NCBI GenBank assembly: GCA_021613535.1
Contig: CP075493.1
Span: 11,780,001 to 11,844,000, forward strand
DNA length: 64,000 bases
Direction: 5' to 3'
DNA from: Adineta vaga
Taxonomy: Eukaryota; Animalia; Rotifera
Position 1 is the stretch's first letter; every line of letters starts with the position of its first letter. Shown here piece by piece: positions 3,126-62,087 of this stretch. The position numbers were made by a program, and so were the translations under genes. The notes beneath the pieces were generated by a model, which worked only from the letters and a program-made list of their open reading frames with translations, made no database searches and was not told where the DNA came from.

Positions 3126-5239
3126 TTATATTTTAATGTAATACGTTAGAATGTCAAAATGATGTGATGCAATCTTTACAAAAAGAGGAAAATCATTTAG
3201 AGTAGTAGGAATATTATAGTATTGGCCACCTGGATAGATTTCTTTGGTATAATAATGTTGCCAGATGAAATTTTGTTCATTGAATTTTGGTAAGTAAACT
3301 GAACGTGATGTAGCTAGATATGTATAAACAGGAGCCACTAAATAATCTGTTCCAAACATATATTGATCTTCTGATTTATAAGTTTCACTATCATAATTAA
3401 AATCATAAAACATTGGACGTAGAATCGGTGTTCCATTTCGACTTGAAATATTCAAATGATATTCAATATAATCACGTAAAGATTCACGTAATTGAATTAT
3501 ATGTACAATTTGTGTGCTATATTTAAATAACCATACTTCATTATGACCACCAGAAAAACCGCATTCATTGTCTGGTAAAGGTGGATAGCGTTCACCATGT
3601 AAACGAAATAAAGGACAAAATGCTCCAAATTGAAACCATCGTACTAGTAATTCTTGAAATTCATCATCCAATAAATCAGCATGACGATAACCACCAATGT
3701 CTGTTGTCCACCAATAAATACCTGATAGAGCAACATTTTGTGCTACTTTTATTTGTTTTAACAATTCTTCCCACGATGAATCAATATCACCTGACCAGAC
3801 AGCTGCATTCAATCGATGACTTCCTATCCATGCTTGTCGACTGAGTGTAATGATGTCGTCTTCTTGTTCTTGTCTTATTCCATCCCAGATTGTTCGTTGA
3901 TGTTCTCTTGCCCATACCATTGCAATTTCATCATCATGCCGTCCATACCACCATTGTAAGCCAGGTCGACTTCTTTCCGGTTCATCTGCATCTAACCAAT
4001 AGATTTTAATACCATAATTAAAATAATTCGTCTTAATTTTATCCCAGATGAATTGTCGTGTTGCTGGATTGAATTGATCCGGAATATAAAGATTACCATC
4101 ATTTGTTGGTAGAGCACGTCCATTAGCACTATGAGTCAATAAACCTGTCATTTCCATAAACACAAAATTCTCAGACTTTTCATCGACATGAGGCCATATA
4201 GATACCATTACATTCATATTGTAGGCTTTTAATTGATTCATCATTTGTGGTATATTTGGCCAACATGTATTTTTAAATTTCCAATTGCCAATTTTCGTCC
4301 AATGAAACCAGTCGACACAATAACACTGACAGGAATTTGACGATCATAATAACCTTTGGCAACTTCTAATAGTTCTTGTTGAGTACGATAACGGTTTTTT
4401 GATTGCCAAAAACCTGAAGCAAATTGTGGTAATGGATTCGGATGACCAATAACATCCACATAATTTTTCATCAGAATAGGATAGAATAATGAAGAAATTG
4501 TTTCTTCTGCAGGTATAGTCGTTATCCATAAATCAAGTTGATGGGTAGCATTTGCTGTCCACATGATTTTTGTATCAGCTTGAACATCAAATGAACCGTA
4601 GCCTGGTTGATTCCAAAGAAATCCAAAACCTGACGTATGTATATACCATGGAATTGATATATCACCATTTGTTGGTGCAGTTGATGAAAAAACAAATGGT
4701 AAATGAAAATTATGATATGGTAATGTTAAATTATGACCATAATGATGTTGACCTAGGCCATATAGATATCCATTTTGAATATGAAGATAAATCAAAGATA
4801 ATTGATAAAGAGTGTAAATAGGTGAATAGATCGATGTAGGATATTTGTATGGTAAAAATGTAGTTGATTGTGTTTGCATAAGAATGAGTCCATCAGATTG
4901 ACGTTGAATTGCCCATGTTGTATTATCATCATTGATATAAAATTTTATATTACCATTGATAAATGTATTTTTATCTGATTGTTGACAGGCTTCTGTATTA
5001 ATGATTGGTTGCTCTGGAAGTAATGCTTGATAATCTGGTGTTTGTATAATTATGTCTGGACTAAGACGAATTCGAATACTATCAGGACCCCATGATTCTA
5101 CTTGTAATTGTTGTTGTAAACTATTTAAATAGATATTTTTAGTAAATATACAGGGTGATGTAGCATTAAATGAAATGAAATTTAGAAGAAGCAGTAAAAT
5201 GAACTGATAAGAATACTTGTAAGTAATCGATTTTAACAT
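3126..5239 (-). CDS. Secreted glycoside hydrolase family 31 (alpha-xylosidase/alpha-glucosidase-like), split by one frameshift near 4315
   Basis: Signal peptide; GFWQSKNRY; the frameshift restores VIVxDWFHW; catalytic WLDADEPE; WSGDI; WTTDIGG; RWFQFGAFCPLFRLHG; QYMFGTDYLVAP. Intronless. Confidence 0.92.
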
Positions 5240-6671: not shown

Positions 6672-9600
6672 ATGTCAGCCATTACTCTCGTCTTCTTAAC
6701 AATCTTCTTAATTGGTGGTGAAATTGGTGGATATGCTAGTGTAACAGGTAAGATTTATTGATGAACAAAAATATTCTTTTTTTGTTTCTCTCTAATACAT
6801 GAAAAAGGATCATTTTATTAATCTTATTATACTTACCATACACATATATTTATTTTTTAGCAACGGAACCAACATGTTCCAACTTTGGAGCATTGAAATA
6901 TTTAAATCAATATAATTTAATCACACTTGGAGATCTATCAACAAGTTCCGATGTTGAATATAAAACGCTTGTATGTGGTGCATTAAAAAGTAGTTCATCA
7001 GCCAATTTTGCCATTCATCTCGGCCAATCCGAAACAAGTCCATCAACTTCAGTACTTGAAATTGCTGAATCAATTACAGATGGAAACGCCCTGAATGTAC
7101 AAGTTGGAAGTGTAGCCGTTGGTAAATCTACAGACAAGATTGTTAAACAAGGAAATGTTCCTTACAAAGTAAACAATCGACAATTTAATATCAATGGTGG
7201 AAATCAAGGTGGACAAGTTGTGTGCGATTCACAATTGGCAGCTAAATGTGCACGTGTGAGTGAAGATTTGAAAGCTCTTTCATTAACTCTTTCAAAACGA
7301 ACACCAAATAATAATATCGTCTTTCCAACTAATCAACCTGGTCCACTCAATATTAATATAGGAACCAAAGATTCAGATGGATTTGCTTTTCTTACAGTTG
7401 CCGATGGCAATTCATTCTTTCATAACCAAAAAGTTCAACAAATTGAAATAAAAAATAATGTTCAAGCATCTTGGATTATCATCAATCTTGGTGGTAAAAC
7501 AATTTCATTTGATCAAGGAAATATTGTCGGAAGTTTGACACAATTAGATCCACGCTCACGTATTTTGTTTAACTTTTATGAAGCAGAACGCATCTCAATG
7601 CAACGAAATTTCATGGGTGCAATGTTAGCACCATTGGCTGCAGTTGATACTAATTCAAATATTGATGGTGCAACTGCTGTTCGATCATTGACAACGAATG
7701 CTGAATTGCACAAACCATTGTATGTTTTTCCATCATGCGCTAACGTCCAATCACCACCACCAACAACAACCACCACTACACCAAAGCCAACAACAACTAC
7801 CACCACTACTCCAAAACCAACAACTACAACAACAACCACCACTACACCAAAGCCAACAACAACAACCACTACTACTCCAAAACCAACAACAACAACCACT
7901 ACTACTGCAAAGCCAACAACAACCACTACTACTCCAAAACCAACAACAACAACCACCACTACTCCAAAACCAACAACCACAACAACAACCACCACTACAC
8001 CAAAACCAACAACAACAACCACCACTACACCAAAACCAACAACAACAACAACAACCACAAAACCAACAACAACTACCACCACTACTCCAAAACCAACAAC
8101 CACCACTACACCGAAACCAACAACAACTACCACCACTACTCCAAAATCAACAACCACCACTACACCGAAACCAACAACAACTACCACCACTACTCCAAAA
8201 CCAACAACCACAACAACAACCACCACTACACCAAAGCCAACAACAACAACAACAACCACTACTACTGCAAAGCCAACAACAACAACCACACCCACACCAA
8301 CAACAACAACAACAACAACTACAACCACTACTGAAGCTCCAACAACTACCGTTGAAGTACCCACTACTACTGAGCCAACAACTACTACTGAAGTACCCAC
8401 TACTACAGAACCAACAACTACAACCACTACTGAAGCTCCAACAACTACCGTTGAAGTACCCACTACTACTGAGCCAACAACTACCGTTGAAGTACCCACT
8501 ACTACAGAACCAACAACTACTATTGAAGTGCCCACTACTACTGAGCCAACAACTACCGTTAAAGTGCCCACTACTACAGAACCAACAACTACTATTGAAG
8601 TACCCACTACTACAGAACCAACAACTACTATTGAAGTGCCCACTACTACTGAGCCAACAACTACTATTGAAGTACCCACTACTACTGAGCCAACAACTAC
8701 TTGAAGTACCTAGTACTACAGAACCAACAACTACCACTCAAGCACCCACTACTACAGAACCAACAACTACCACTCAAGCACCCACTACTACAGAACCAAC
8801 AACTACCACTCAAGCACCCACTACTACAGAACCAACAACTACCACTCAAGCACCCACTACTACTGAACCAACAATCACCACTGCAGTTCCAACAATATCA
8901 ACAACAGTTACTACTAGTACTACTGAAGTACCAATTACAGTTACTGTAGCATCAACTACAGCAACAACAACCACTGAAAAAACAACGACAAAGACAACAG
9001 AACCAACTACAGTACAACTGCTAAGAGAAGTAAGATAGTAAAATATTGTAATGTTTGAATACATATGTTGAAATTAAACTGTTACCGTATGCAATTCTGG
9101 TGGTAAATGTGTTTTTGAAAAAGATTAAGGGAACAGATGTGATCAAAAACTTGTATAATAGACTATTTATAGACGAAATTCTATCATAACCCTCTTAAAT
9201 GACAAACTATTTTCGATAGTTTAATTTGATCAAATAGGACGAAATATCACTCCAGAAGTGGAACACTATTAATGATTATACTTTAAGAGTATCGTCCAAA
9301 GAATTATAGGACATCAAACATTTGAATTTACGTTTGATTGAGAATAGTCTGAATTTTCAATTATTTTTATTAGCTACCAAACGTGAAATAACTGAGAAAT
9401 CGTCAACCACACAAAGAACTCAATCACCTTCGACCGAACCACAAAATAACGGTACATCAACTACGACGAAAACATCAAGCACGCGTACGAATACACCTAC
9501 GGCTGTCACAACGAAGCTCACAACAGGTGAATATAATAAAAATGAACTGTTTGATGAATGAATCTGCTCATCATTTATGGAAAATAGTCTTACATGAAAT

Positions 9601-20415: not shown

Positions 20416-21306
20416 ATGTGGATTCGTATGCAATTGGTGGTAATGGTGATTTTGCCTTTGATCACTTTTGGGCAACAATATGGAACGTGTACAGCAAGAA
20501 ATGGTCGTAAAGGTGAATGTATAAGCACTAGTAAATGTGCATCCAATAGTGGAGCATCAGATCCAGCAAATCTTTGTCCTGGTGATCAAACAATTCAATG
20601 TTGCACATATCGTACGTGCACAAATAGCAAAGGTGTGGCAGGTCAATGTCAACCCACCTCAACATGTACAGGAAGTTCTGATCCAGCCAATCTCTGTCCT
20701 GGTGGTAATAACATTCAATGTTGTACAACTGGTTCTGCTCCAACTGGTCCTAGTCCAAGTAAACCGATAAACACGATGCTTACAGGTTTAGCTGATATTC
20801 TTCGTGGTGCTGGTCTCAATGTTGTTGAAGTTGCTGGTTGGAGAACTCGTGGTCACGGTGTAATGTCATCCGTGAAGGGTATTGTTGTTCACCATACAGC
20901 CGGTCCAGCTTCAGGTGATTTTCCCTCATTGGCAGTTATTCGTGATGGTACTTCTAGCCTTGCTGGTCCACTCTCTCAACTTGGACTTGGCCGTTCAGGA
21001 ACTTGGTTTGTTATTGCTGCCGGTCGTTGCTATCATGCTGGTAGTACCCTTGATGATTCTATCTATGGAAATAATAACGCCATTGGTATCGAAGCTGAAG
21101 GAGTTGGTCTTCCAGCAACTGATAGTGGACATGGATATTGGCCCGAAGTACAATATCAAAGTTATCTTAGAGGTGTTAGAGCTCTCAAAAATGCTTATGG
21201 TGTTCCAACTGCTCGTGTACTCGGCCATAAAGAAGCAGCAGTACCAAAAGGTCGTAAAATTGATCCTAACTTTTCAATGGCTGAATTTCGTGCTCAACTT
21301 GGTTAA
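20416..21306 (+). CDS. Secreted N-acetylmuramoyl-L-alanine amidase (Amidase_2) with two N-terminal 6-Cys repeats
   Basis: Signal peptide; two C..G.C....C..CPG....CC repeats; LADILRGAGL.VVE..GWRTRGHG, HHTAG, HAG, IGIEAE, GHKE, KIDP. Confidence 0.92.
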   Translation: MWIRMQLVVMVILPLITFGQQYGTCTARNGRKGECISTSKCASNSGASDPANLCPGDQTIQCCTYRTCTNSKGVAGQCQPTSTCTGSSDPANLCPGGNNIQCCTTGSAPTGPSPSKPINTMLTGLADILRGAGLNVVEVAGWRTRGHGVMSSVKGIVVHHTAGPASGDFPSLAVIRDGTSSLAGPLSQLGLGRSGTWFVIAAGRCYHAGSTLDDSIYGNNNAIGIEAEGVGLPATDSGHGYWPEVQYQSYLRGVRALKNAYGVPTARVLGHKEAAVPKGRKIDPNFSMAEFRAQLG

Positions 21307-28427: not shown

Positions 28428-29408
28428 ATGACGAATAACTGGATGAATTTTTTCTTGACATTGGTAATTCTGTTCGTTGATGCGACATTAGCTCAAAATG
28501 GAGCGGACACAAGTGCTGGTATTAATAGCTTGGTAGTCATACGTCCACGATCGATGTCTGTCGATTTTTGGACAGCGGAAAGAATGAAAGCAGCCAAGGA
28601 ACCTGTTGCCGTTCCATCGGTAAACAATATGAATATCGGCCGTACTGTAGCAATACCGAGTGGTCCTTCAGTAACAGTTCCTGGTCGAAAACCCGATGCT
28701 TCTAGTCCATTAGGAAGAGTTCTCAACACTCGTGGTCTTCATGTAGCTACTACTGGACGAGTGTTTTGGTCATGTAGTAGCAATAGTCTAAGCTGTTGTT
28801 CTGCTAGTGTTGTTCCATCGACAAGTGGTGATGTTATTGTGACAGCAGGTCATTGCGTGTATGATACTACTGCCTTAAAATGGTTGATAAACTGCAATTG
28901 GATTTTTGTTCCAGCCTATTACAATGGTACTGCTCCTTACGGTCGATGGCCTGCGCGACAAGTAGCTGCTTTAAATTCATGGACGCAATCAAATCCAAAC
29001 TTTAATTATGATGTAGCATTTGTTGCTTTGTCATTAGTTAATGGAAAACATATCAATCAACTTACTGGAAGTCAATCATTAGGTTTCAACTATCCACGTA
29101 ATCGACCAACTTATGCATTTGGATATCCTGTTAATCTTGCTAAAGGCGAAGTTCTTCAATTGTGTACAGGAATACCAAGTGCTTCTAGATACACAGCAAA
29201 TAGTTATGTTGGTCAAGGATTATCCAATTGTTATATGACAGGTGGTTGCTCAGGTGGCCCATGGTTACAAAGTTTTAATGAATCAACTGGCAGTGGAGTT
29301 ACCTATTCAGTAAATAGTTTTACCTACTCACTAGCACCAAATACTATGAATGGACCAGTTTTTGATTCCAATATTCAAACACTTTGGAATTACATGACTG
29401 CCCGTTAA
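28428..29408 (+). CDS. Secreted trypsin-like (V8/glutamyl-endopeptidase-like) serine protease, actinobacterial type
   Basis: Signal peptide, propeptide FWTAERMKAA, catalytic triad TAGHC / YDVAF / GGCSGGPW, and APYGRW. Intronless. Confidence 0.92.
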   Translation: MTNNWMNFFLTLVILFVDATLAQNGADTSAGINSLVVIRPRSMSVDFWTAERMKAAKEPVAVPSVNNMNIGRTVAIPSGPSVTVPGRKPDASSPLGRVLNTRGLHVATTGRVFWSCSSNSLSCCSASVVPSTSGDVIVTAGHCVYDTTALKWLINCNWIFVPAYYNGTAPYGRWPARQVAALNSWTQSNPNFNYDVAFVALSLVNGKHINQLTGSQSLGFNYPRNRPTYAFGYPVNLAKGEVLQLCTGIPSASRYTANSYVGQGLSNCYMTGGCSGGPWLQSFNESTGSGVTYSVNSFTYSLAPNTMNGPVFDSNIQTLWNYMTAR

Positions 29409-47577: not shown

Positions 47578-47935
47578 TGAAAACATATTCTTACTCCTCT
47601 TTTTTTGTAATTTTGAGTGAATTGTATTTAATCCAGTGATTTATGTTTGAGAGTGCTTTTACATAGAAATCTTAAAATAAAGCTTTATTTTTATGATGAT
47701 TTTGGCATTACGTCTTTCAATTGTTTTATCGTTTGTAAAACTATCACCCCCACATGCCAACATATTGCTTTTTCTTCTATTCTTTCTCGATAGTATTATT
47801 CATTGTCGATAAAAAGTAACCAGCAAAAGAGAACACTATAAAAAAAAGCATCAGTCACTTTTTTTCCAACATTTCAATCACTTTGTACTTCATACTTCGA
47901 ACGACTTTCTCTTGCTAGGAAGAAGAAAAAAAAAC

Positions 47936-50174
47936 ATGCAGATGGATAGAATGCCTTCAAGAAAGAGTTTAGAAAATGCACTTGTTATTTGGCTTCATCC
48001 AACGAGTGATGATATCCAACAATCTATTGAACAATTACATCAAACTATTGGTCTCGTAGAGGTATTTAATGATGAAGAATCTTTTATTAATCATGTCGTT
48101 GATCTGCCTGATGAACGTATTCTATTGATTATTACAAAAGATCTTAGTGAATTAACAATTGAATTGATACGTCAATTACCACAAATTGATTCAATATATT
48201 TATATAATTCAAAGGATCAAACAAATTCAATTTCTTCTCTTCGAAAGTTTAAAGGTATTGCTCTCAATGATGAAACATTATATCAATTATTACGATCAGA
48301 TATTCGTCGTAATGAATATGATAATGTTACATTTAATCTAATTACTAGTGATTTATCAACATTTTCTAATGATCAATTCAATCGACAAGAAGCAGCATTT
48401 ATGTATACTCAATTATTAAAGGATATATTGATTGAAATGAAAGATGATAGTAAAGAAGAGTTGATTGCATTTTGTTGAGAACAATATGCTGATAATATTC
48501 GTGCATTACAATTTATTAATGATTTCGAAAAGAATTATCAATCAAATGAAGCAATAAATTGGTATACGTGAAAGTTTTCTTTATAAAATTTTAAATAAAG
48601 CACTTCGAACACAAAACATCGAAGTTTTATATAAACTTCGAACATTTATTCGTAATTTACATTTTCATCTAATTGAATGTTATCAACAGCAAAAGAATAA
48701 TTCATTCATATCAGTCGTATATCGTGGTCAACGTATGTCTAATAATGAGTTTGAAAAAATTCAAAATAACAAAGGTGGTCTTCTGTCTGTATCCAATTTT
48801 TTCTCGACAACTGAAGATCAATCATTAGCAATGATATATGCAGGTGTTACAAATGAGAAAGAAACTGCTATGGTATTTGAAATCTCTATCGAATTATCTT
48901 TAACTGATCAAACGAATCCTTTTGCTAATATACAAGAATTTAGTACTTTTGGAGAAGCCGAAAAAGAATGGTTATTTTCATTTGGTAGTGTTTTTCGCAT
49001 AGTTGATATAAAACAAAGTGAAAACAATCAACCATGGTATATTCATTTATTATTAACTAATGAATTCGATCAACAATTACAAATGATCACGGAACATTTT
49101 CGTAGTGATATTTCTCTTGGATTACTTTTACCTGTTCATTCTTTAGCGAAATTATCTTATAAAATGGGTGATTATTTACTTGCAATCGAATTTTATCGAT
49201 TAGCCTTAAAATTCGAATCAGCATCGCGAGGACAAATTATGATTCTCAAAGAACTTGGACAAACTTATGAACGTCTTGCTCTTTATGAGAAGGCATTCGA
49301 TTGCTTTAATATAGCACTTTCCATGCATGAACAATTGCATGAGAAGCAAAAGAATGATTATCATCGTTTAGCAGCAATCTATATTAGTCTGGCTACTATT
49401 TGTACAAACTTTAAACAAGATAAAAAACAATCTCTTGATTATTTAAATGAAGCACTACAGATTGAATTAAATCTTGAACAGTCAAATAAGGAAAATGTTC
49501 TCAATTGTTACAATGATATCGGTTTTATTCATTTTACAGAAAAAGAATATGATAGATCTCTTTTGAATTATCAAAAGGCTCTAGATGTATGTATGGAAAT
49601 ATATCCAGCAACTCATCCAAATATTGGCGTGATACATATGAACATGGGAAATGCATATCAAGCACAATCATGTTCGAAAGAAGCTTTAGAACATATGAAA
49701 AAATCCCTTGATATTCAACTTGCTTCTCTTCCTGCTGATCATCCTGATATTGCTAAATCATTTAATAATATATCCAGTATATATAATGCATTAGGACGCC
49801 ATAAGGATGCTTTGAATTATTGTGAAAATGCATTAAATATTTATTTGAAACGAATGCCACAAAATCATCCTAATCTTGCTATTTTATATAATAATATGAT
49901 CGCACTTTGCGATAAATTAGGTCAATTAGATGAATCATTAGATTATCGATATAAACAATTAGATATTTATGAAGCAACATTGCAATCTGATGATACGAAG
50001 ATTGGCATTGCATATAACACAATAGCTGCTACATTATCTTTTCTTCGACGCTTTGATGAAGCAGCAGATTATGCACTCAAAGCAGTAGAATTCACCACCC
50101 GAGTTTTTGGTACAAATCATCCTGCTACGGAAACTTGTGCTAAGAATTTGGAGGATATATTAAATCGTTCGTGA
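47936..50174 (+). pseudogene. Arginine-type (R-S-E) ADP-ribosyltransferase + TPR protein, with an in-frame TGA (48476-48478) and a frameshift near 48568
   Basis: LVIWL..; QEAAFMYTQLLKDIL; FC*EQY; WYT..SFLYKILNKALRTQ; YRGQ, FFSTT, EAEKEWLF; about 7 TPRs (HPDIAKSFNNI). Confidence 0.8.
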
Positions 50175-51173: not shown

Positions 51174-53122
51174 ATGGCTCGTCGTTGGGTAGCAGTATCT
51201 GCAATAGGTTTTGCTGTGGTTGTGGCAATTGTGCTTGGGTTAATACCAGTTTACCTTCGAAAATCTAATAAGTCAGGTGAGTTTAGAAAATGAGCAGTCA
51301 TCCTCTTTCAATTGGACATATATTTTTTATTACGTCTGTTCCATTTTAGGAAGTATTACCGACTCACTGGACACATCATTAAATTCGCTTTCGATTTATC
51401 CCACTGGTTCATATAAAGCTAACATGGCTGAATTTACTCAATCGACGGAAACAAATCGTTCATTTCTTCCATTAAATCAAAGTTTACTAACTCAAATCGC
51501 TGCGATCGACAATAGTTCTTTTGTTTTCGAAGCTGGACGTGAACAATTTCTCTACTTTCGTGTATCTCAAGATGTATTTGTTCAACAACGAAGTACATTC
51601 AGTCTTAGTGGTATTGGAATACATTTTGGTCGTAAAAATGATAGCCTAAACGTTGTTCCAATTAATAATCAACAACAGTCATCCGCAGGAGTTACTATTA
51701 TTCCAACAAACCTTCCCGACAGATCAACATTAGTACGTATACGAATTGCCACTATGCCAACGATGTGTTCTCAAACAGGCATAGATGATTCATGTACAAA
51801 TGTCGAATATAGTGCTTATTTAATATTTGGAAAAACTCAACTGTCTAGTTCATCTATAATAAATCAAGCGAATGTGGCTTGTGGTGATATTTGTAGTAGT
51901 TCAGACAGTTACTTAGCTTGTTCAGCATTCTGTGGTGCTCAATGTGATGGAAATCAAGTTGCTGGTGCTGATACACCGGTATCGCGCCGTTATAATCTCG
52001 GTCGAAAATATAGTCAATTCAAATTTCAGTATGAGACCTACTCAATTCGAGATCGAATCAAAGTCTGGAATGATATCGAACTATTATTTGATAGTGGATG
52101 TGTAGGAACCCAAGGTGATAAAAGTACGTACTTGACGTTATCGAATAAAAACAATATACGTGTTGATGTTGAACCAAACTGTGCTTGTCAAAGTTTAAGT
52201 GGCTGTACAGGGCAGAATGGTATTTCACAGTTGTTTGTCCCGAAATGTGTTCGTCAAAGAATCAGAAAGCAAATAGTAGGGATACGGTGAAATTAAGCTC
52301 AGACGGTACGGAAATAACAAACGGTATGATATTATATATTACAGAAGATGCTGGCATGCCTTCTTTAGTCGCTTCATCGTGTGAAGCAGTTGAATGGGAA
52401 GTGCTCTTTAATTACCAAGCTAAATTTACAGGTGCATTGTCTTTTTCCAAGACACTTACTGGCCAATCATCCGATTCTTCATCGTTCGATATTGTTAGAT
52501 CTTTGCAAGGTGAAGTTATTGGTGGTGCTATTACAGCAAAATGGACTATTCTTGCCACGAAAGTTACTGGTGAAATTACCTTTAATATTCTTGGAAAACA
52601 ACCCACTACATACGCTATAATGAATTATATTGGAGCGCACATCCTCTATGGTATGCAAAGAATATAGCTGCACAGGAAAGTAACGGAGGAAAACAGTTTA
52701 ATAACGGCTATCCATTGTTCTCGGCTGCGCACGATAATGGATACGGCATTTATCAAATTACAAATCCATCTCCTACTTACAATGAAGTATGGAACTGGAA
52801 AGCAAATGTCGACAAAGGAATTCAAATTCTCAATCAGAAAACGAACGCCGCAATTACATGGATGAATGATCAACGTGCACAGGCCAGGCAACAAACTGGT
52901 AGAGATCAACCCGTCGATGATCATCGAGTTGGATCGAACTGTTTCTTTTCGGATAATAGCACTCGAACAATCGTAGATGCTGTAGCTATCAAACAATTTA
53001 ATGGAGCATCTGGTGGTAACTATTGTGCTTAGGATAATAGCAATGGCAAATGGAAATTTAATCCTCTGAACAATCGAGGTGAAAACTATGTTCTACTTGT
53101 ATGTAATCGAGTAGTTTTATAA
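51174..53122 (+). CDS. Type II membrane protein with a Cys-containing beta-rich domain and a C-terminal lysozyme-like (SLT/GH23-like) domain; frameshifts and a TAG at 53030-53032
   Basis: Exon 1 MARRWVAVSAIGFAVVVAIVLGLIPVYL; intron 51277-51349; FKFQYETYSIRDRIKV..LFDSGCVGT..VEPNC..WYFTVVCP; LWYAKNIAAQES..QF..GYGIYQIT..WNWKANVDKG..AIKQFNG..NYV. Confidence 0.65.
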
Positions 53123-53347
53123 GTTCTAACATTTCTGTGAAGTTATTTGTTTTTTTAAATTATTCAAGATAAAATAAACACATAAACTAACGAACTATAA
53201 TAATTCTTCCTTGAATGATTCTATCGTTTTCACTTCGACGAAAATCGATGGTAAAGTTCATCTATATATATTGTGCTATTCACCAATCAAATATTGATTA
53301 ATATCATCATGACAAGAAGAAAAACTTCGTTTTGAACTCAAATAGAT

Positions 53348-56300
53348 TTATTCACGTTTGATACTTAGCATTTTAGCAACAGATTTGTTTCGTTGTTGAC
53401 CTTTTAAAAAGTTAAATTGATATATTTCTGAATGTCCAGAAAATTGAATATCAGCGATGAATGATCCTTGTCCAGTACGATAAGACTGAAATGCTTGTTC
53501 GATCTGTTTTTCTGCCATTTGTTCATGACGTACCCAAGTATCGTCTTCATTGCAATAGAACCAATGACGATTATCTGATAATGTGCGCACTAGTCGACGT
53601 TCAATTGATCGTGAACATGATGTTCTTGTATTTGTCTGTTTATTTCGTTGAAAATCAAATTTATACACATCAGAAGTATCAGTTAGACAGGAACTTAAGA
53701 GTGGAGTTTCAATTTCAGTAGGTCCATCATATAATTTCCAATGTTGATAAACTTTCTCCAATATTTCATTCATAGTATCATTATAGGAATGAAATTGCCT
53801 ATTATGTTGTTGCCAATGCCATTGAAAAGGTGACATCCATAAAGATTCTATATCAGAATAATATGGTATTTCAGTCGGAAAAGGTGAGAGTTGTCGATGG
53901 ATAGCTTGTCCATAGGTAACAATGAGTACAGGTAAATTAAATGCATATGTCCAATCGATTGGATTGTTAACGACATAACAGAAGTGATCGATTTTTGTAA
54001 TTTGAGTACATCGAAGAATAAAAGCAATGATCATCTGATTAAATCCAGTGTGATTTCCTGCCTTTTTAGTATAAGTATCTGATATAATTGCAGATATTCC
54101 AAAGTATTCACCGGGACCATGAACTTGATTTAGCCGACGATTTGGATCAAAGCCATTTTGACAAATAGGAACAATGGATTCAGCAGGTGAACCATGATAA
54201 GCAAAGAATCCTTTGGCTAAATCTGGTGGAGACGAATGACCTAATATTTCGTTAGCTTTGTAGAAACGCAGTAATGCTTGGTATTCTTTTCTCAAATAAG
54301 GATTTTCATACATTTGACCGACTGGTCTTACAAGTGGATCGAAAGGCCAATTATTTTGAACAAATTTTTTAGCAGCAGAAAATACTTGAGATAAAAATGG
54401 ATGATGTTTCTTTTCCTCTGCGACTTGATCACACGTTCGCCCAATATGAAGTTCATCATCAATGACTTGACATCGAGGACATACATTTTGACCACACGTT
54501 AAACAAATTTGATAACTATTATTAAGTCGTATAAGTCCGTCACATTCGTCATTCGGGCAGAAGACTCGATCATCATCTTGATGGTTTGTTGTTAAATAAT
54601 GATGAATAGAACTTTTAAGTAAAGATAAATATAGTTGTTCATTATTATTAAAGATAATTTGAATATCACGAATATGAATATTTGATTGACAAGCTTTGCA
54701 TTGAAGAGGAAATGTATGAGATGTGGCAAGCGCTCGAGCAGTACATCGACAATAAGTATGTCCACAAATGCGAAAAAAACTAGTCGAAATCGATGATTTT
54801 TGTTGACAAAAAACACATCGACGTTCTTGTCGTTCTGATGTTCCAAATCGTATCGTACCATTGTCATCATCATCTTCCTCTTCATCAACATCACTTTCTA
54901 GATCATCAGTAGTAGCAGTTAGTTCGTTTAGAAGTTGAAGAACTTCACTTTCACAAGCTTTCAAGTCCATCGATGAAACATTTGGTTTACCAATGAGTGT
55001 AATTGTCGCTGTTTTACGATTAAAAGCAATTGAACAAGCTTTTGTTGACCATTTGGAAGTGATCTGTTGTAATTTAACAGATGCTGATTTTTGTTGACCA
55101 AAGAATGTTGCGACGGTTGCACTGAGCTCAAATTCATAAAAACGTTCATTGAAACTTTCTGAATAGTCAGCAATTTGTCGCATCAAACGTCCTTGAGATG
55201 TTTGTGGACCTAGAATTTCAATATTTGTCCAATATTTATTTGGATTAATCGCTAAGTCTAATTCTTTTGCCCATTTTTGTATTTCACCAACATCTTCCAA
55301 TTCACGAAATAATTGTTTCTGAAGTTCCGTATTCAATCGAATATTAATCGGTGCAAAGGTTTGTGCAAGCATGAATGCAGCTAAACTTGTTTTTTGAGGA
55401 TTTCCATTACTGAATATACAACGGCATTTGTTCAGATTGGACATACGTTTACACTTCACTTGTACATCGAATCTTTGACAAATACCATCGATTGTTTCTT
55501 CAAAGTTTGGATATAAATCTATGTGAGAAATGGTAACTGTTGCCGAACTATCAACGATCCATGGATATATATGAGAAGAGAATATTTGTAAAGCAGCTTC
55601 ACGACTAATAGTAGTGAGATGAAAAATATTTTTACTTAGAAAAGATGATCGATTGTTTCTTGCAAAAGGATCGTCATTTTTCGTTACACTAGTTCGAACA
55701 GGTTTTTGTTTTAGACCACTTTTACCCAAGATAGTTATTAAGAATATATTATTGCATAATTGCGAATTATAGATAGCTGCAGCTCGATCACGTTCTTCAT
55801 CATTATGAAATGTTATTTTTGCCCATCCACTTGCATTATTTTTTGTTCGTCCAACATATACAGATCTAGGAGTAGGTCCATTACAGTTGCGAAGACATTG
55901 CCGAAGAAAAGTTTCATTGGTAGTATTTGGTAAGGTATTTAATTTAATAAATGACGCTGTCTGAGCTTCTTTATTTGTTTGTACACATCGCATTATAATA
56001 TCAGCACCATATCGATCGATAATATCGTTCACAATGACATTCGATGGAGTCTGAATAACCAATTCTCGAGCCCAACTTTCTTTCTCACTATCACGATATC
56101 TTCCGAAACCATCTTCTTCAACAACCACATGATAGAAGGCATTTTTAGTAATGCACGTCGAAATGTATCTTCATTTTTGAAAATAAGAAATACATTTTTT
56201 TTCTCTATGTCACGTTTTGAATTATAAAAACCATGCGCTTTGATTTCATTCCATTCGATATCAATTATCTTTTTAATCCAATCTTTTAAAGTATTTATTG

Positions 56301-59300
56301 TTTGACAAGGAACATTTTGAAGATGAAGTTTTAATGCATCAGGCATTGTATTTATATGTGTACAAACTAAACCACTTTGAAAATTCGCTTTAATCGGTCC
56401 ACAATCAAACAGTTCATATGCATCAGATAGTTTTTTTAATACTTCATCGTAAGAGCTTTGCTACTATAGATACGATAGTCGATTTATCTGTTTCTAGGCC
56501 CCAAATAAAGAAACGACATTGAGATCGATCGTAGGATAGACAAACCATTTTGCCCACAGTTCTGATTTGAAAGTATTTAATTTTAAACGCAATTGATGAG
56601 CAAGTTCCCAACCGATATTGTTCAATGTCATTAAATTTTGTATAGATGATTGTGCTATGATATCGGATTTTAATATGGGATGAAGTCGTTCAGTAATATA
56701 TCTTCCCGATGGTAATTGAGTAATAGTCATTGCCACAAAATGTTGATAAAGCGCACGATCTGAATCTTTCTGTAGTTTCTGCATGAATACACTAGTATTA
56801 GTAATATTTGCACGAATATCAGTTGATATTAATCGAACACCTTCGATTGGTAATTGTGGAACAAGTAAATAGCCACACTGTTCAGGAAAGAGTTTAGCAA
56901 GACAATTACCTATGATATTAATTGCATCTTTTGATGTTTCATGACCCGGTTGAAGCCAAAATGTACTTTTGATTTGTTTGATAATAGTTTCACACGATGC
57001 ATCGACATGTTGAAGAACTTTATTATTTAAACTATTTTCGTTACTATGTCTCACTCGACATATACAAGATTTAATGAATTTGTTACATTTTGAGCATTTA
57101 CCTTGTATGTTTTGTCCACCAGCATTTTTCCATCGATCATAAACTGAATAAAAATGAAAAAGATCACTTTTATAATTACGTGCTTCAACAGCAATACGTT
57201 CTTTTGCTTCTTGTTTCTCTTCTTGTGTTGTACCACCCATGAAGAAAACCGAACCAGGTGCTGTAAAATTGTCACGATAGCAACAGCTTGATCTAATAGA
57301 TTCTTGTTTTCAGTATAAATATCTACAATAAAAGCACTCAAACGTGGATCAAGTCCAAGTTCAGTAAATAATTCGCCTCGTTTTGTAATAGTTTGTTCTT
57401 CAATGCATTTCAGTCGAGTGAGTAAATCAAGAGAATGCTGAATAGTATCACTTTGTGGTTGATCCATGAATGAAAAAGTTCTTGGATCGAACTTCAATCG
57501 TATGAGTTGTAAAAGAATAAGATCAAGTGATGATCGAAGAATTTCTGGTTCGATATTTGATCGTATTAATTCCTTATCTTCATATAAACGAATACAATGA
57601 CCAGATGCAGTTCGTCCAGCACGACCCATACGTTGATCAGCAGATGAACGCGAAATACGTACTGTTTCAATAACAGTCAAACGACGTTTCACATCATAAC
57701 GAGCTTCTTTTGCCAGACCAGAATCGATAACTAATCGAATATTTGGAATAGTCAATGATGTTTCAGCAACATTCGTACAGAAAACTACCATTCGTTTATC
57801 TACTTCATTAAATTTGATTACTTTTTCTTGATCTTCAGGTGACTGTGAACCGTAAAGTGGAAATGCAATGCAATCGTCAGGAAGTTTTGATCTGAATATT
57901 TTCAGTGCTCGTTCAATTTCACCTTGACCAGGAAGAAACACAAGTGTATGTCCTTTATGTTGCGGATAAAGTTCAAGAATCACAGGAACAATATGTGTTG
58001 TAATAAGTTGTTGATCGGAACAGTTCGATGGTGGTGGTTTTTCACTTTTGATAACAGGAAATACGCGACCTTCCACTTGCAAAGGTAAACTACTAGGACG
58101 ATCGAAAAACTGAAGAAAACGAGTTGGATCAATGGTAGCCGAAGCAATAACAACATAAAAATCATTGGGACGTTGTTTAAGTAACAATTTCGAAATACCA
58201 ATGACAATATCAGTATTGAGCGATCTTTCATGAGCTTCATCAACGATCAAGACACGAACATGTTTCAAACTAGGATCATGTTGACTTTCTCGAATAAGTG
58301 CAGCATCAGTCATGTACATAATATCCCTGCCGGGTACTCGAGTTGCATTACCACATTGGTATCCGATTGACTCACCAGGTGATTTACCATCATATTCTTC
58401 AGCAACACGACGAGCAAGAGATAATGCAGCTACCACACGTGGTTGAGTACAGACGACAAGTGAACCAAAATGTTCAGCAGCATATTGAGGTAATTGAGTA
58501 CTCTTTCCACTACCGGTTTCAGCAGTAACAATCAGAACACGTTCATGTTGAAGACGTTGACAAAATTCTTGTCGACAAGATAAAATTGGTAATTGAGCTT
58601 TCTGACGATTCTTTATTCTGTCATCGAAAGTTTTCAAATCTCTTTTTCTATCCTTTTGAATTTCATTTATCTCACCAGGATTCCATTGTGAATGATGAAG
58701 ACGAATACAATTACAATTCGAACATGTATCAGGTTGATCACACTGTGGTGAACGTTCCGGTGGATGATTGAATCGGCATGAAAGATCACGACAATCAACT
58801 CCAAGTAGACAAAGTAATGTAGCTCGTTCTGGTGGATGCAAACATAAACAACTGAGATTGGTACAGTTCTTTTGATTAGGACATGGTTGAGGTCGAGTAC
58901 GTGGATGCAACTTTGAACAGTTCCATTGCTCACATCTAGCGCGTAGAGGACATTCTACAGAACGTGTTTTCGGATGTAAATTTCTACAGGTTAGCTTTAC
59001 AGCGATTGCCATCACGACACTTTCCTTTTCGTTTAAAAGGATGAGTAGCTGTACAGTCATAATCATCACATTTCTCACCATCCATACAAGGATTCCATCC
59101 GTCAGGATGATCAGAAGTACAGTCGACGTTAAAACATTTTACACCATATTGGCATCGTTTTGATTTCGTATTCGTCGATTGATCCGAACCGATAGAATGT
59201 AACGAATTTATGGATAGACACGAATCACTGGTAGTACTACTTGCGTCATCAGATTCAACATTTTGTTCCTTCTTTGTTCCATCTTCTTCTGTCGCATAAG

Positions 59301-59899
59301 TTAGTCTATATTTCGAGTTTGTATACATCTTACGATTAAGTGGACGTCTATTTTGTGTATCTGACTTTTCGATAAAATTTCTCGTTGATGGCAGATCTTC
59401 AAGAAAATATTCTAGTGTCGTGATTTTATTGGAACAAATCAACTTACTTGATCTTTGCTCGTGTTGAAATCCATTTTGATTTTTATTGAAATAATGTACG
59501 TTGGGGTTTGTGATCATAGTAGATGATGATTTATTTGACAAATCATAAATTTTTTGTCTTAATCTAGGTTTTTTTAAAGGTTGATTAACTGGAAGACTCT
59601 TGAGATGTATAAGAATAAGAATCTGTTTCGTGACGTCTCGATGATGATACAATACATTTGATTCTACTTCCTAAAATTTCAGCTCCTGACCACTGACGTA
59701 CAAATTCAGTTGCATCCTCTTCATCTTGAAAATCATTGATCCATGCATAACGGGTATTATTATTATTATTGGAATTCTTCGGAATAAAGACTCGAGTTGG
59801 TGGTAAACGAAGTTCTTGAGCTAGTTCATTGTAAGTGATATATCCAGGAAGAAAAGGAATTCTCACACTCCATTTATCAGATGAATTATTTGAAGCCAT
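53348..59899 (-). CDS. Giant RRM - CCCH zinc fingers - DEAH helicase - RRM/KH-like - RING-IBR - PARP-type ART - 2xWWE protein (about 2100 aa once about 6 frameshifts are joined)
   Basis: KWSVRI..AWINDF RRM; tandem C-x5-C-x4-C-x3-H fingers; AETGSGKST, TQPR, DEAH, SAT, FLPGQ, TNVAETSLTIP, QRMGRAGR; RING CVFC..CGH.YC..CKAC; IBR CPNDEC..CLTC..CPRC..H..C; YHGS..GF..HGPGEYF; WHWQ and WFYC..W WWE domains. Confidence 0.85.
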
Positions 59900-60213
59900 T
59901 ATCTATGTATTCCAACAACTTCTAAAACTATCATAATTCTTTCTTGCTATTTTTTCACGTTGAATAAAGAACAGAACAGAATGAATCATAGAATGGTTAT
60001 GTGCCGTGGTAAATATTGGAAATTGTTCTGAAACAAACCTATTGAAAAATATAAAGATGTCACCACCAAAGTTTCTAGTAAAAACAAACTTTATTTCATT
60101 ATAATCAAGATAGAAAAAAAATCAAAATTTACTAAATCTTAAAAAATATTTTAGTTATTATCCACATTGATGTAATGCGTTTTTGAACTCAAGTGCAGTT
60201 TATCAGCAAAGAA

Positions 60214-62087
60214 TTAATCTATTTCATTGGACGCGTTTAGTGATAGTATCTGAAGTTGTTCTGGAATTATCCGATAAGATTGTAAAGCGTTAGCATCATT
60301 AATGTCAGGTTCAAAAGGATCTTGGTAACAATCATGTAATAAAAATAAAGAAGGAATTGATTTTGCCGCATTGATTGCTTCGTAAGTTAAATTCAAGCAG
60401 ATCTGTCCATGACATTCCTGTAGCTTAGGATTAGCAGCTTTGACAGATTGTAAACTCCCATAATTGAAAATGATGCTATCGATAGGACATATTTTAACTC
60501 CTAACTGTCTGCGAAGCCAATTAATGGCTATGAATATAGTATACCAGGTATCTTGGGCACAAATTAACATTTCATTTGTGACATGATCTACTGGTACCAG
60601 CAGAACTGTTCGAGTACCATCCATTGGAGATACAAGTTGGTATTTAGATTTGCTGATCATACCGAGTGGATTTCCAATGAATAGTGCACTGTTTGATAGT
60701 GCACCACAGACGATATTGAATTTCTTGTCTGCAGAAAGTATGTGTATCATTTCTTGACATTGTAAACCTTTTTCAACAGGTCTGTCTTCCACTTTTCTAG
60801 ACAAATTTTGAATGGTTTTGTCGACTTTTATCAGTTGATTTGAAGAAGAAACATTCTTAAAAATTGTATCAGTGTATACTGATGCTTGTGATAATCGTTC
60901 ATTCAGAGAAAGTAACGAGAGTACACGATCATACCAAGTAAGAGGATGATAATGCAAACTAAGACGAGCCTCGTTATCGTTCGTTATAGTTAGTTCAATA
61001 CGGTATGGTTCGCGATAAGGAATATCTTCATTATTGAATACACTACCAACAAATGTCTTTAGTAGGACTCGAGCTGAATCAGCTAAATCGAAGCATAAAT
61101 CCTCTGGTCTGTTGTCATCAAGATTGAAATGAAACACTGTATCATCTAATTCAAATATGGGATAATCGGTTTGAGCTAATTTTATTAAAGGAGAAGATGT
61201 TTCAGCATGTGTTGTCGGATGTAGATATTTGCAATCATTTAGTCTACAATGACTACCAGCATGACATTTTCCTCGACGTTTACGTGGATGATTTCTTGTG
61301 CATTCGTAGTTATTACATTTCTCGCCATCCATACAAGGACTCCATTCGTCAGGATGAGCAAAAGTACAATCTACTTTATAACATGTGACACCATTGATAC
61401 ACGGCTTTGATCTTTTATTCTTCAATTTAGTTGTACTTGCAAATATGGGTGTCATTGGATATTTTTCAGCGTGAGCAAGTTCACATTTCAGATTTGTACA
61501 TGAATCGTAATGAGAACATCGTTGATGACGATATTTACATTCGTTACTTCTTTCACGACATTTTCCTTTATTTGCATAACGACATAATGAATGTTTGTCT
61601 TCTGCAGTTCGTTGCTTCATTAAGTTTCTTGTAGATGGTAATTCTTCAAGTAGAAAAAAAAAATATTTTCTTCCAGTTTTCCATTACTATGAGGTACCTT
61701 ACTTGGTGTTTCTCGATGCGGAAATATGTTTCGATCACTGTTGGAATCAGAGACACTTAGATGATTTCGTGACGATTCGTTACTAAATGCTAGTGATTCC
61801 TGAGAAGAATGAAGAGTCGATTTCCGTTCATTTCTTGGTGGTGATGTAACGCATCTGATTCGTTGTCCTAAAACTACAGCTCTTGACCATTCACTGACAA
61901 ATGTAATTGCTTCTTCTTCACTATTGAAATCGTTGATCCATGCACACGTGGTATCGTTAACAGTTTTCGGAATAAAAACTCGTGAGGTTGATAAATGGAG
62001 TTCTTGTGCTAATTCGATATAATTGATAGATGTAGAAAGTGGAGAGATTCTTACACTCCATTTATTACGTGAATCTTCAAATCCCAT
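60214..62087 (-). CDS. RRM - CCCH zinc fingers - degenerate HIT-like domain protein (paralog of the 5' part of the adjacent gene)
   Basis: The 59-nt intron 61644-61702 joins the 155-aa and 468-aa ORFs in frame. Motifs: KWSVRI..AWINDF; CRYANKGKC..C.YRH; PCMDGEKC..C..HP; VLLVPVDHV..IFNYG..CHGQI. Confidence 0.78.

Follow-up and report, generated by a model that had tools for sequence, protein, structure and literature searches.

A DEAH helicase–RING1–IBR protein of Adineta vaga with a predicted mono-ADP-ribosyltransferase and tandem WWE domains in the RING2 position

ZNFX1 combines an SF1 helicase, a zinc-finger array and a ubiquitin-pathway module, and acts on RNA in innate defence. Helicase-RBR proteins are also known, and the helicase (Plant I) subfamily of RBRs is of ancient origin (PMC2904391). 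PARP10, PARP11, PARP12, PARP14 and PARP15 MARylate RNA and carry CCCH, RRM or KH domains (PMC11088682), and the RING–DTC module of DELTEX ligases joins ubiquitin to ADP-ribose (PMC9527308). Two eukaryote-wide PARP surveys mention fusions with neither a helicase nor an IBR (PMC2964712, PMC4245714).

The gene described here lies in a window of 64,000 nucleotides, the whole stretch of DNA analysed, on an 18.1-Mb contig of the six-contig, 100.8-Mb assembly of Adineta vaga. Its product is best explained, on sequence comparison, as a relative of the DEAH11/12-type helicase-RBRs in which RING2 would have been replaced by a mono-ADP-ribosyltransferase (mono-ART) and a tandem WWE reader. A full-text literature search covering mostly papers outside subscription returned no description of a helicase–RING1–IBR–ART–WWE family, in line with an earlier note on this DNA, which did not recognise the architecture as characterised; family proteins stand in databases under automatic names only.

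Domain organization and reading frame

The protein is composed, in order, of an RRM, seven Nab2-type fingers, a DEAH helicase, an RRM/KH array, RING1, IBR, a PARP-fold ART and two WWE domains. The features of the gene are as follows.

53348–59899, minus strand: whole gene, about 2167 residues by frame arithmetic, with one intron and six frame-shifting indels relative to short-read contigs
59657–59887, minus strand: N-terminal RRM (Pfam RRM_1, E 0.002), matching residues 19–99 of a paralogue
59397–59447, minus strand: in-frame 51-nt GT..AG intron, skipped in a contig of run X5, ends checked
58695–59154, minus strand: seven Nab2-type C-x5-C-x4-C-x3-H zinc fingers (motif scan; Pfam zf-CCCH_tandem/zf-CCCH_2)
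57612–58523, minus strand: DEAH helicase core, motifs I, Ia, II, III, IV, V and VI intact, dN/dS 0.18–0.23 against paralogues
56140–57611, minus strand: helicase C-terminal region (HA2/OB-type tail and linker), from comparison of the family profile with the DEAH12-like profile (probability 99.9)
55610–56065, minus strand: RRM pair, one nested in the other (model pLDDT 93; RRM matches to 4e-18; Z 8–10)
54917–55558, minus strand: three KH-like alpha/beta domains (secondary structure; Foldseek matches to KH proteins)
54689–54817, minus strand: RING1, C3HC4, all eight ligands present, second zinc loop C-x2-C
54431–54559, minus strand: IBR, C6HC (Pfam), ligands fully or almost fully conserved across 56 relatives
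53903–54403, minus strand: PARP-fold ART, with His 54196, Tyr 54106, Cys 53980 at the inferred third triad position and a short acceptor-side loop
53591–53833, minus strand: WWE domain 1 (Pfam; DTX1 tandem WWE, 2e-14)
53354–53569, minus strand: WWE domain 2, which has diverged to some extent here (Pfam; family alignment)

The earlier note had read the gene as a helicase-RBR-type fusion with a DEAH core, and its domain order is borne out by Pfam (Helicase_C, 1e-13; DEAD, 1e-8; WWE, 5e-16 in two stretches; IBR, 7e-5; PARP, 6e-4); that description was incomplete, to which the seven Nab2-type fingers, the RRM/KH array before RING1 and the 51-nt intron are added here. All motifs of a DEAH/RHA helicase were found, namely I (58523–58497), Ia, II (DEAH, 58241–58230), III (SAT), IV, V and VI (57635–57612). 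The helicase C-terminal region, which shows a weak HA2_C match in a paralogue, contains assembly breaks at 57263, 56534 and 56461, and the third Nab2-type finger straddles another at 58989. The KH-like domains match the KH fold of PCBP2 (Z 8.5) and are colinear with the KH region of DEAH12-like proteins. The gene was searched in pieces, and an intact paralogue served as query for full-length searches.

In the assembly the gene consists of six open pieces. Short-read contigs from three studies carry compensating indels of 1–5 nt at all six breaks, located at 59593 (+5), 58989/90 (+2), 57263 (+1), 56534 (+1), 56461/2 (−1) and 56134 (+1), and a fourth run, guessed to be RNA, has the indel at the only break that it covers. 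With these indels, frame arithmetic carried out segment by segment, without joining sequence, gives zero internal stops and about 2167 residues after removal of the intron. Run X5 is probably RNA, because it skips this intron, and one of its contigs spans 58565 to 55213, crossing four breaks. The gene is thus real and transcribed, with one frame for one polypeptide, as the earlier note had inferred while proposing that short reads be used to polish it. Two paralogues hold the whole chain in single intronless frames. Against two paralogues dN/dS is 0.18–0.49 across every domain, indicating purifying selection. We infer that the breaks are consensus errors of a collapsed diploid assembly, which fits the substitution differences found within about 10 bases of most of them. 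Introns as the cause of the breaks were ruled out, the paralogue DNA alignment showing 1-nt gaps and the sole intron being in frame; a pseudogene or separate genes were rejected, though with a slight chance left for a broken second haplotype, on the single-frame paralogues, the indels of the three studies and the stop-free frame arithmetic.

Several neighbouring genes in the window were also noted. A tandem gene immediately upstream (60214–62087, minus strand) carries the same RRM and Nab2-type fingers (tblastn 3e-16 and 1e-25), followed by an orphan domain of about 330 residues that is HIT-like by eye and has a weak paralogue at C3:18193694; this C-terminal domain had no match in Pfam, PDB or Atlas. 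A divergent gene running from about 63570 past the window end (L032 4304–6728, plus strand) combines pieces of RRM-like, CCCH and kinase-like type and adds to the cluster a third RNA-binding module, here joined to another effector. A bdelloid-type ART-like gene with TPR repeats, assigned by eye, lies about 3 kb from the helicase–ART gene (47912–50174, plus strand). Further away, a long Thr/Pro-rich repeat frame following a collagen-binding/choice-of-anchor-like N-terminal domain (by eye; 6893–9038) is possibly secreted and mucin-like or foreign, and three intronless genes look bacterial or fungal by eye: an N-acetylmuramoyl amidase-like gene (20416–21306, plus strand), a trypsin-like serine protease (28428–29408, plus strand) and a GH31-like glycosidase (3126–5239, minus strand).

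An ART–WWE–WWE module in the RING2 slot

From the helicase tail to the IBR, profiles are colinear with those of DEAH11/12-type helicase-RBRs, comprising helicase tail, RRM/KH array, RING1 and IBR (probability 95.9–99.9, with 95.9 for the RRM/KH array), which upholds the kinship with Arabidopsis DEAH11/12-type fusions suggested by the earlier note. Outside the family, these proteins provide the nearest helicase relatives (37–40% identity). In the helicase tree the ART-bearing family forms a clade of its own on a long stem (support 100), next to the DEAH12-like RBRs, a sister placement with an SH-aLRT of only 82 and a thin outgroup. A. vaga has both types, its intron-containing canonical helicase-RBR with intact Rcat (C4:9224373–9229426) coexisting with six ART-type copies. 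Unlike DEAH11/12, the window protein lacks Rcat, has ART–WWE–WWE there and bears N-terminal Nab2-type fingers.

The RING1 and IBR domains are both present. The eight RING1 ligands are kept in 53–55 of 56 family rows, the nearest solved structures of RING1–IBR are HOIP (4e-10) and HOIL-1, and comparison with the DEAH12-like RING1–IBR gives an hhalign value of 99.0. A profile built from 14 DEAH12-like Rcat domains gave zero RING2/Rcat matches in the six frames of window positions 53000–60200 and reached no more than 18 bits in other family members, whereas it scored 76–86 bits on its own members and 45 bits on the canonical A. vaga helicase-RBR in raw six-frame DNA. The missing RING2 of the earlier note therefore stands, and because the defining Rcat, with its catalytic cysteine, was tested and is absent, the protein is not an RBR ligase. 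A reading of the zinc domain as a degenerate Rcat was rejected: the DEAH12-like IBR aligns far better (99.0 versus 78.3), and a Tyr stands at the position of the Rcat catalytic Cys.

The ART starts at the position where Rcat starts in DEAH12-like proteins, as judged by profile comparison, and ART–WWE–WWE stands exactly in the RING2 slot. The motifs YHGS (54199), GEYF (54112) and CYVV (53980), from which a PARP-like domain had been proposed, are accompanied by a PARP fold in the AlphaFold model (mean pLDDT 87), with Z scores of 13.5 for PARP12 (rmsd 2.7 over 139 residues), 13.4 for PARP15 and 13.2 for PARP14; the nearest structures are the mono-ARTs PARP12, PARP15, PARP14 and PARP10. The fold and the triad His and Tyr are those of an ARTD/PARP protein. 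The NAD+-pocket residues His, Gly and Tyr do not vary across 56 relatives, and the Ser and second Tyr are kept in 55. The third triad strand reads C-Y-V-V here versus L-F-V-V in PARP15, and a conserved Cys apparently stands in place of the Glu, giving a putative H-Y-C triad; this Cys occurs in 53 of 56 fusion members at a position set by strand order and the PARP15 motif match rather than by residue-level superposition, and I, Y, A or M are frequent there in ART-only matches. H-Y-C is absent among the listed human ART triads (PMC11088682). Because the Glu found third in poly-ARTs (PARP1/2, tankyrase) is absent, the protein is not a poly-ART and the domain is probably of the mono-ART type, as the earlier note had suggested.

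The nearest structures belong to the clade 3 mono-ARTs (PARP10/12/14/15), which together with ZAP (PARP13) share with the window protein the ART fold and His/Tyr motifs (Z about 13) and the presence of CCCH-type fingers, RRM/KH and tandem WWE in one chain. Clade 3 has an H-Y-I/L/Y triad and a C-terminal catalytic domain, whereas the ART here is internal with WWE after it, has Cys at the inferred third position, is about 30 residues shorter, with a much shorter loop preceding the third triad strand than in PARP15, and is fused to a helicase and RING–IBR. The two WWE domains, likewise correctly noted earlier, have DTX1 and ZAP as nearest structures. This copy departs from consensus at conserved residues of the ART loops and WWE domains (G241N, G259T, R387S, P393S, R473H and R495L in the numbering of alignment A1). 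DELTEX ligases (DTX1–4, DTX3L/PARP9) are alike in their tandem WWE, nearest in DTX1 (2e-14), and in a RING beside an NAD+/ADP-ribose-binding module; the window protein differs in the RBR origin of its RING and in having its own helicase and ART, and the DELTEX-defining DTC domain had no Pfam or structure match in it. ZNFX1 is similar by analogy only, in its helicase, zinc-finger array and ubiquitin-pathway module, and differs in its SF1 helicase, its ligase chemistry and its lack of an ART.

Copies and relatives of the gene

The A. vaga genome contains six copies of the ART-bearing form. At C5:3.42 Mb a paralogue has the complete chain in a single intronless frame of 2207 residues; those at C1:14.77 Mb (2044-residue frame) and C5:0.23 Mb (1717-residue frame, without WWE) join helicase and ART. 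Two further paralogues are split in the assembly, once at C5:2.38 Mb and several times at C1:2.22 Mb, and the helicase part alone is found at C3:18.58, 13.51 and 0.79 Mb, the last fragment adjoining a long SecA-like helicase-domain frame.

Among rotifers, intact homologues occur in Adineta, Rotaria and Didymodactylos. Outside rotifers the family was found in Vermamoeba, Pyxidicula, Pelomyxa, Mastigella, Aphanomyces, Lagenidium, Pedospumella, Mallomonas, Paulinella, Chilomastix, Carpediemonas, Kipferlia, Namystynia, Picozoa and Hydra, so that groups with relatives comprise amoebozoans, stramenopiles, metamonads, Paulinella, a diplonemid, Picozoa, Hydra and a sponge. In Hydra the gene consists of one 5520-nt frame and lies on a chromosome of 61 Mb; at a locus that clusters with the sponge Ephydatia the ART-bearing form is spread over two frames and lacks WWE, and gene models of Macrostomum span the helicase–KH part. 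The family thus spans at least six eukaryotic lineages, patchily, and because of this span and the six genome copies the window gene is an old design, not a peculiarity of its locus. The interpretation in the earlier note held for the polypeptide, its kinship, the slot and the probable mono-ART type; the family and the six copies were missing from it.

Domain numbers vary from 0 to 14 fingers and from 1 to 7 IBRs per protein, several members having 4–7 IBRs. In about 14 protist members the C terminus is a nucleotidyltransferase whose GGxVRD..DxD motif is intact, and one begins with a 3'-5' exonuclease (row P0241). The nucleotidyltransferase-ended rows (P0018, P0050, P0051, P0054, P0056, P0227, P0239 and others) have a head of the poly(A)-polymerase/CCA type.

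A bdelloid-specific invention is ruled out by the relatives across protists, Hydra and the sponge. In a rapid LG+G4 tree, built after omitting 14 rows, a single clade of the intronless animal copies was rejected (AU p 0.008), and simple vertical inheritance of one animal orthologue was rejected with animal monophyly by the same value. Repeated gene transfer from protists is likely from these sequences, with ancient paralogy followed by losses as a possible alternative.

Possible roles of the protein

The protein may be a single-chain RNA-surveillance effector, scanning RNA and mono-ADP-ribosylating, most likely directed against foreign (viral or mobile-element) RNA; we regard this as an even call, least secure where it assigns a role in defence. 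Single-stranded RNA would be bound by the fingers, RRMs and KH-like domains, and the DEAH motor would move along it or remodel it. Using NAD+, the ART would attach a single ADP-ribose to the end of an RNA, to bound proteins or to itself, and the WWE pair would bind this mark or adenine nucleotides, concentrating more enzyme. The RING1–IBR, presumably incapable of RBR transthiolation, would serve as a dock or scaffold for E2~Ub or ubiquitin, linking the mark to turnover. This proposed recruitment is the weakest step of the reading: no linchpin after the last RING1 cysteine is conserved among the 56 relatives, and no acceptor cysteine domain for ubiquitin was found in the protein. By analogy, the best explanation is that the protein would work like ZAP/PARP12-type sensing, PARP10/14-type marking and DELTEX-type reading in one chain.

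The nucleotidyltransferase and 3'-5' exonuclease fusions of protists imply that added effectors are nucleic-acid-directed. Patchiness, six copies, variable finger and IBR numbers and intronless animal copies that do not form a clade are features typical of conflict genes. The kept NAD+-pocket residues, the mono-ARTs as nearest structures, the MARylation of RNA by PARP10/11/12/14/15 and the expression of the C1:14.77 Mb paralogue, which falls rather than rises in desiccation and radiation contrasts, also favour this reading. Since dN/dS is below 1 in every domain, there is no direct sign of an arms race. Because H-Y-C is not among the human ART triads, the ART may bind NAD+ without transfer.

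A housekeeping role in RNA or ribosome quality control, in which stalled or damaged ribonucleoproteins would be cleared with an ADP-ribose mark instead of ubiquitin, unrelated to infection, is conceivable but on the whole unlikely. It agrees with descent from a helicase-RBR lineage of ancient origin (PMC2904391), with purifying selection and with the constitutive, low-level expression of a paralogue, but sits poorly with the patchy distribution, the expanded copy number, the shuffled domains and the probable transfer of genes, and with the retention in the same genome of a separate canonical helicase-RBR with intact Rcat.

DELTEX-like chemistry is distinctly doubtful. Here the ART fold and WWE domains would only hold NAD+ or ADP-ribose, and RING1 would let E2~Ub discharge onto ADP-ribose, RNA or the active-site cysteine, the module replacing Rcat functionally. 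The exact fit of the ART in the Rcat slot, the RING1 and IBR zinc ligands kept across the family, and the Cys in 53 of 56 fusions, a position often I, Y, A or M in ART-only matches, would suit this chemistry, for which the DELTEX RING–DTC gives a precedent (PMC9527308). The second RING1 loop is the short C-x2-C in 37 of 52 parsed family rows versus C-x4-C in 6 of 9 DEAH12-like rows, and the long RBR loop keeps E2~Ub open, blocking direct transfer (PMC5462532); HOIP, however, is a transthiolating RBR despite its C-x2-C, the linchpin is not conserved, and the model, with a pTM of 0.51, does not fix the inter-domain geometry.

It is very unlikely that the window copy is a broken allele or decaying gene whose paralogues carry the family function. 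Six frame-shifting differences in the assembly, departures from consensus in the WWE and ART loops and 22 non-synonymous against 16 synonymous listed variants would be expected of such a copy, and because short-read contigs drop rare variants, a broken second haplotype could escape notice; yet three independent studies have the frame-restoring form at six of six places, most breaks lie as expected of collapsed-diploid consensus errors, a spliced contig exists and dN/dS is well under 1. That the protein belongs to the bdelloid repair toolkit, as a PARP responding to DNA damage or desiccation, is hardly tenable: irradiation or rehydration raises the expression of many A. vaga PARP genes (PMC10809525), but the accessory domains are all of RNA-binding types, the family occurs in organisms without such a lifestyle, and the single traced paralogue was not induced, being expressed (mean 60) and down in seven of seven listed desiccation/radiation contrasts (PMC10809525 supplement), data that belong to the C1:14.77 Mb paralogue, traced by its annotation and ZZ-finger neighbour, and not to the window copy.

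A fuller version of the RNA-surveillance reading, to which we give little credence, is an undescribed, ancient, horizontally mobile RNA-defence machine. In it the H-Y-C ART would take both the place and the role of Rcat, one chain would find RNA, cap or mark it with ADP-ribose and couple ubiquitin to the mark or via the active-site cysteine, and the fused nucleotidyltransferase would tail RNA in protists.

Each domain is known; in their combination the ubiquitin chemistry of Rcat is apparently swapped for ADP-ribose chemistry on the same RNA-binding chassis, with a predicted ART that has a cysteine at the Glu position. The swap is kept across at least six eukaryotic lineages. It would provide a single-chain test system for how RNA sensing is coupled to mono-ADP-ribosylation and to ubiquitin, functions divided in mammals among PARP9, PARP10, PARP12, PARP14, ZAP and DELTEX proteins, and the gene family is a candidate for RNA defence in protists and bdelloids.
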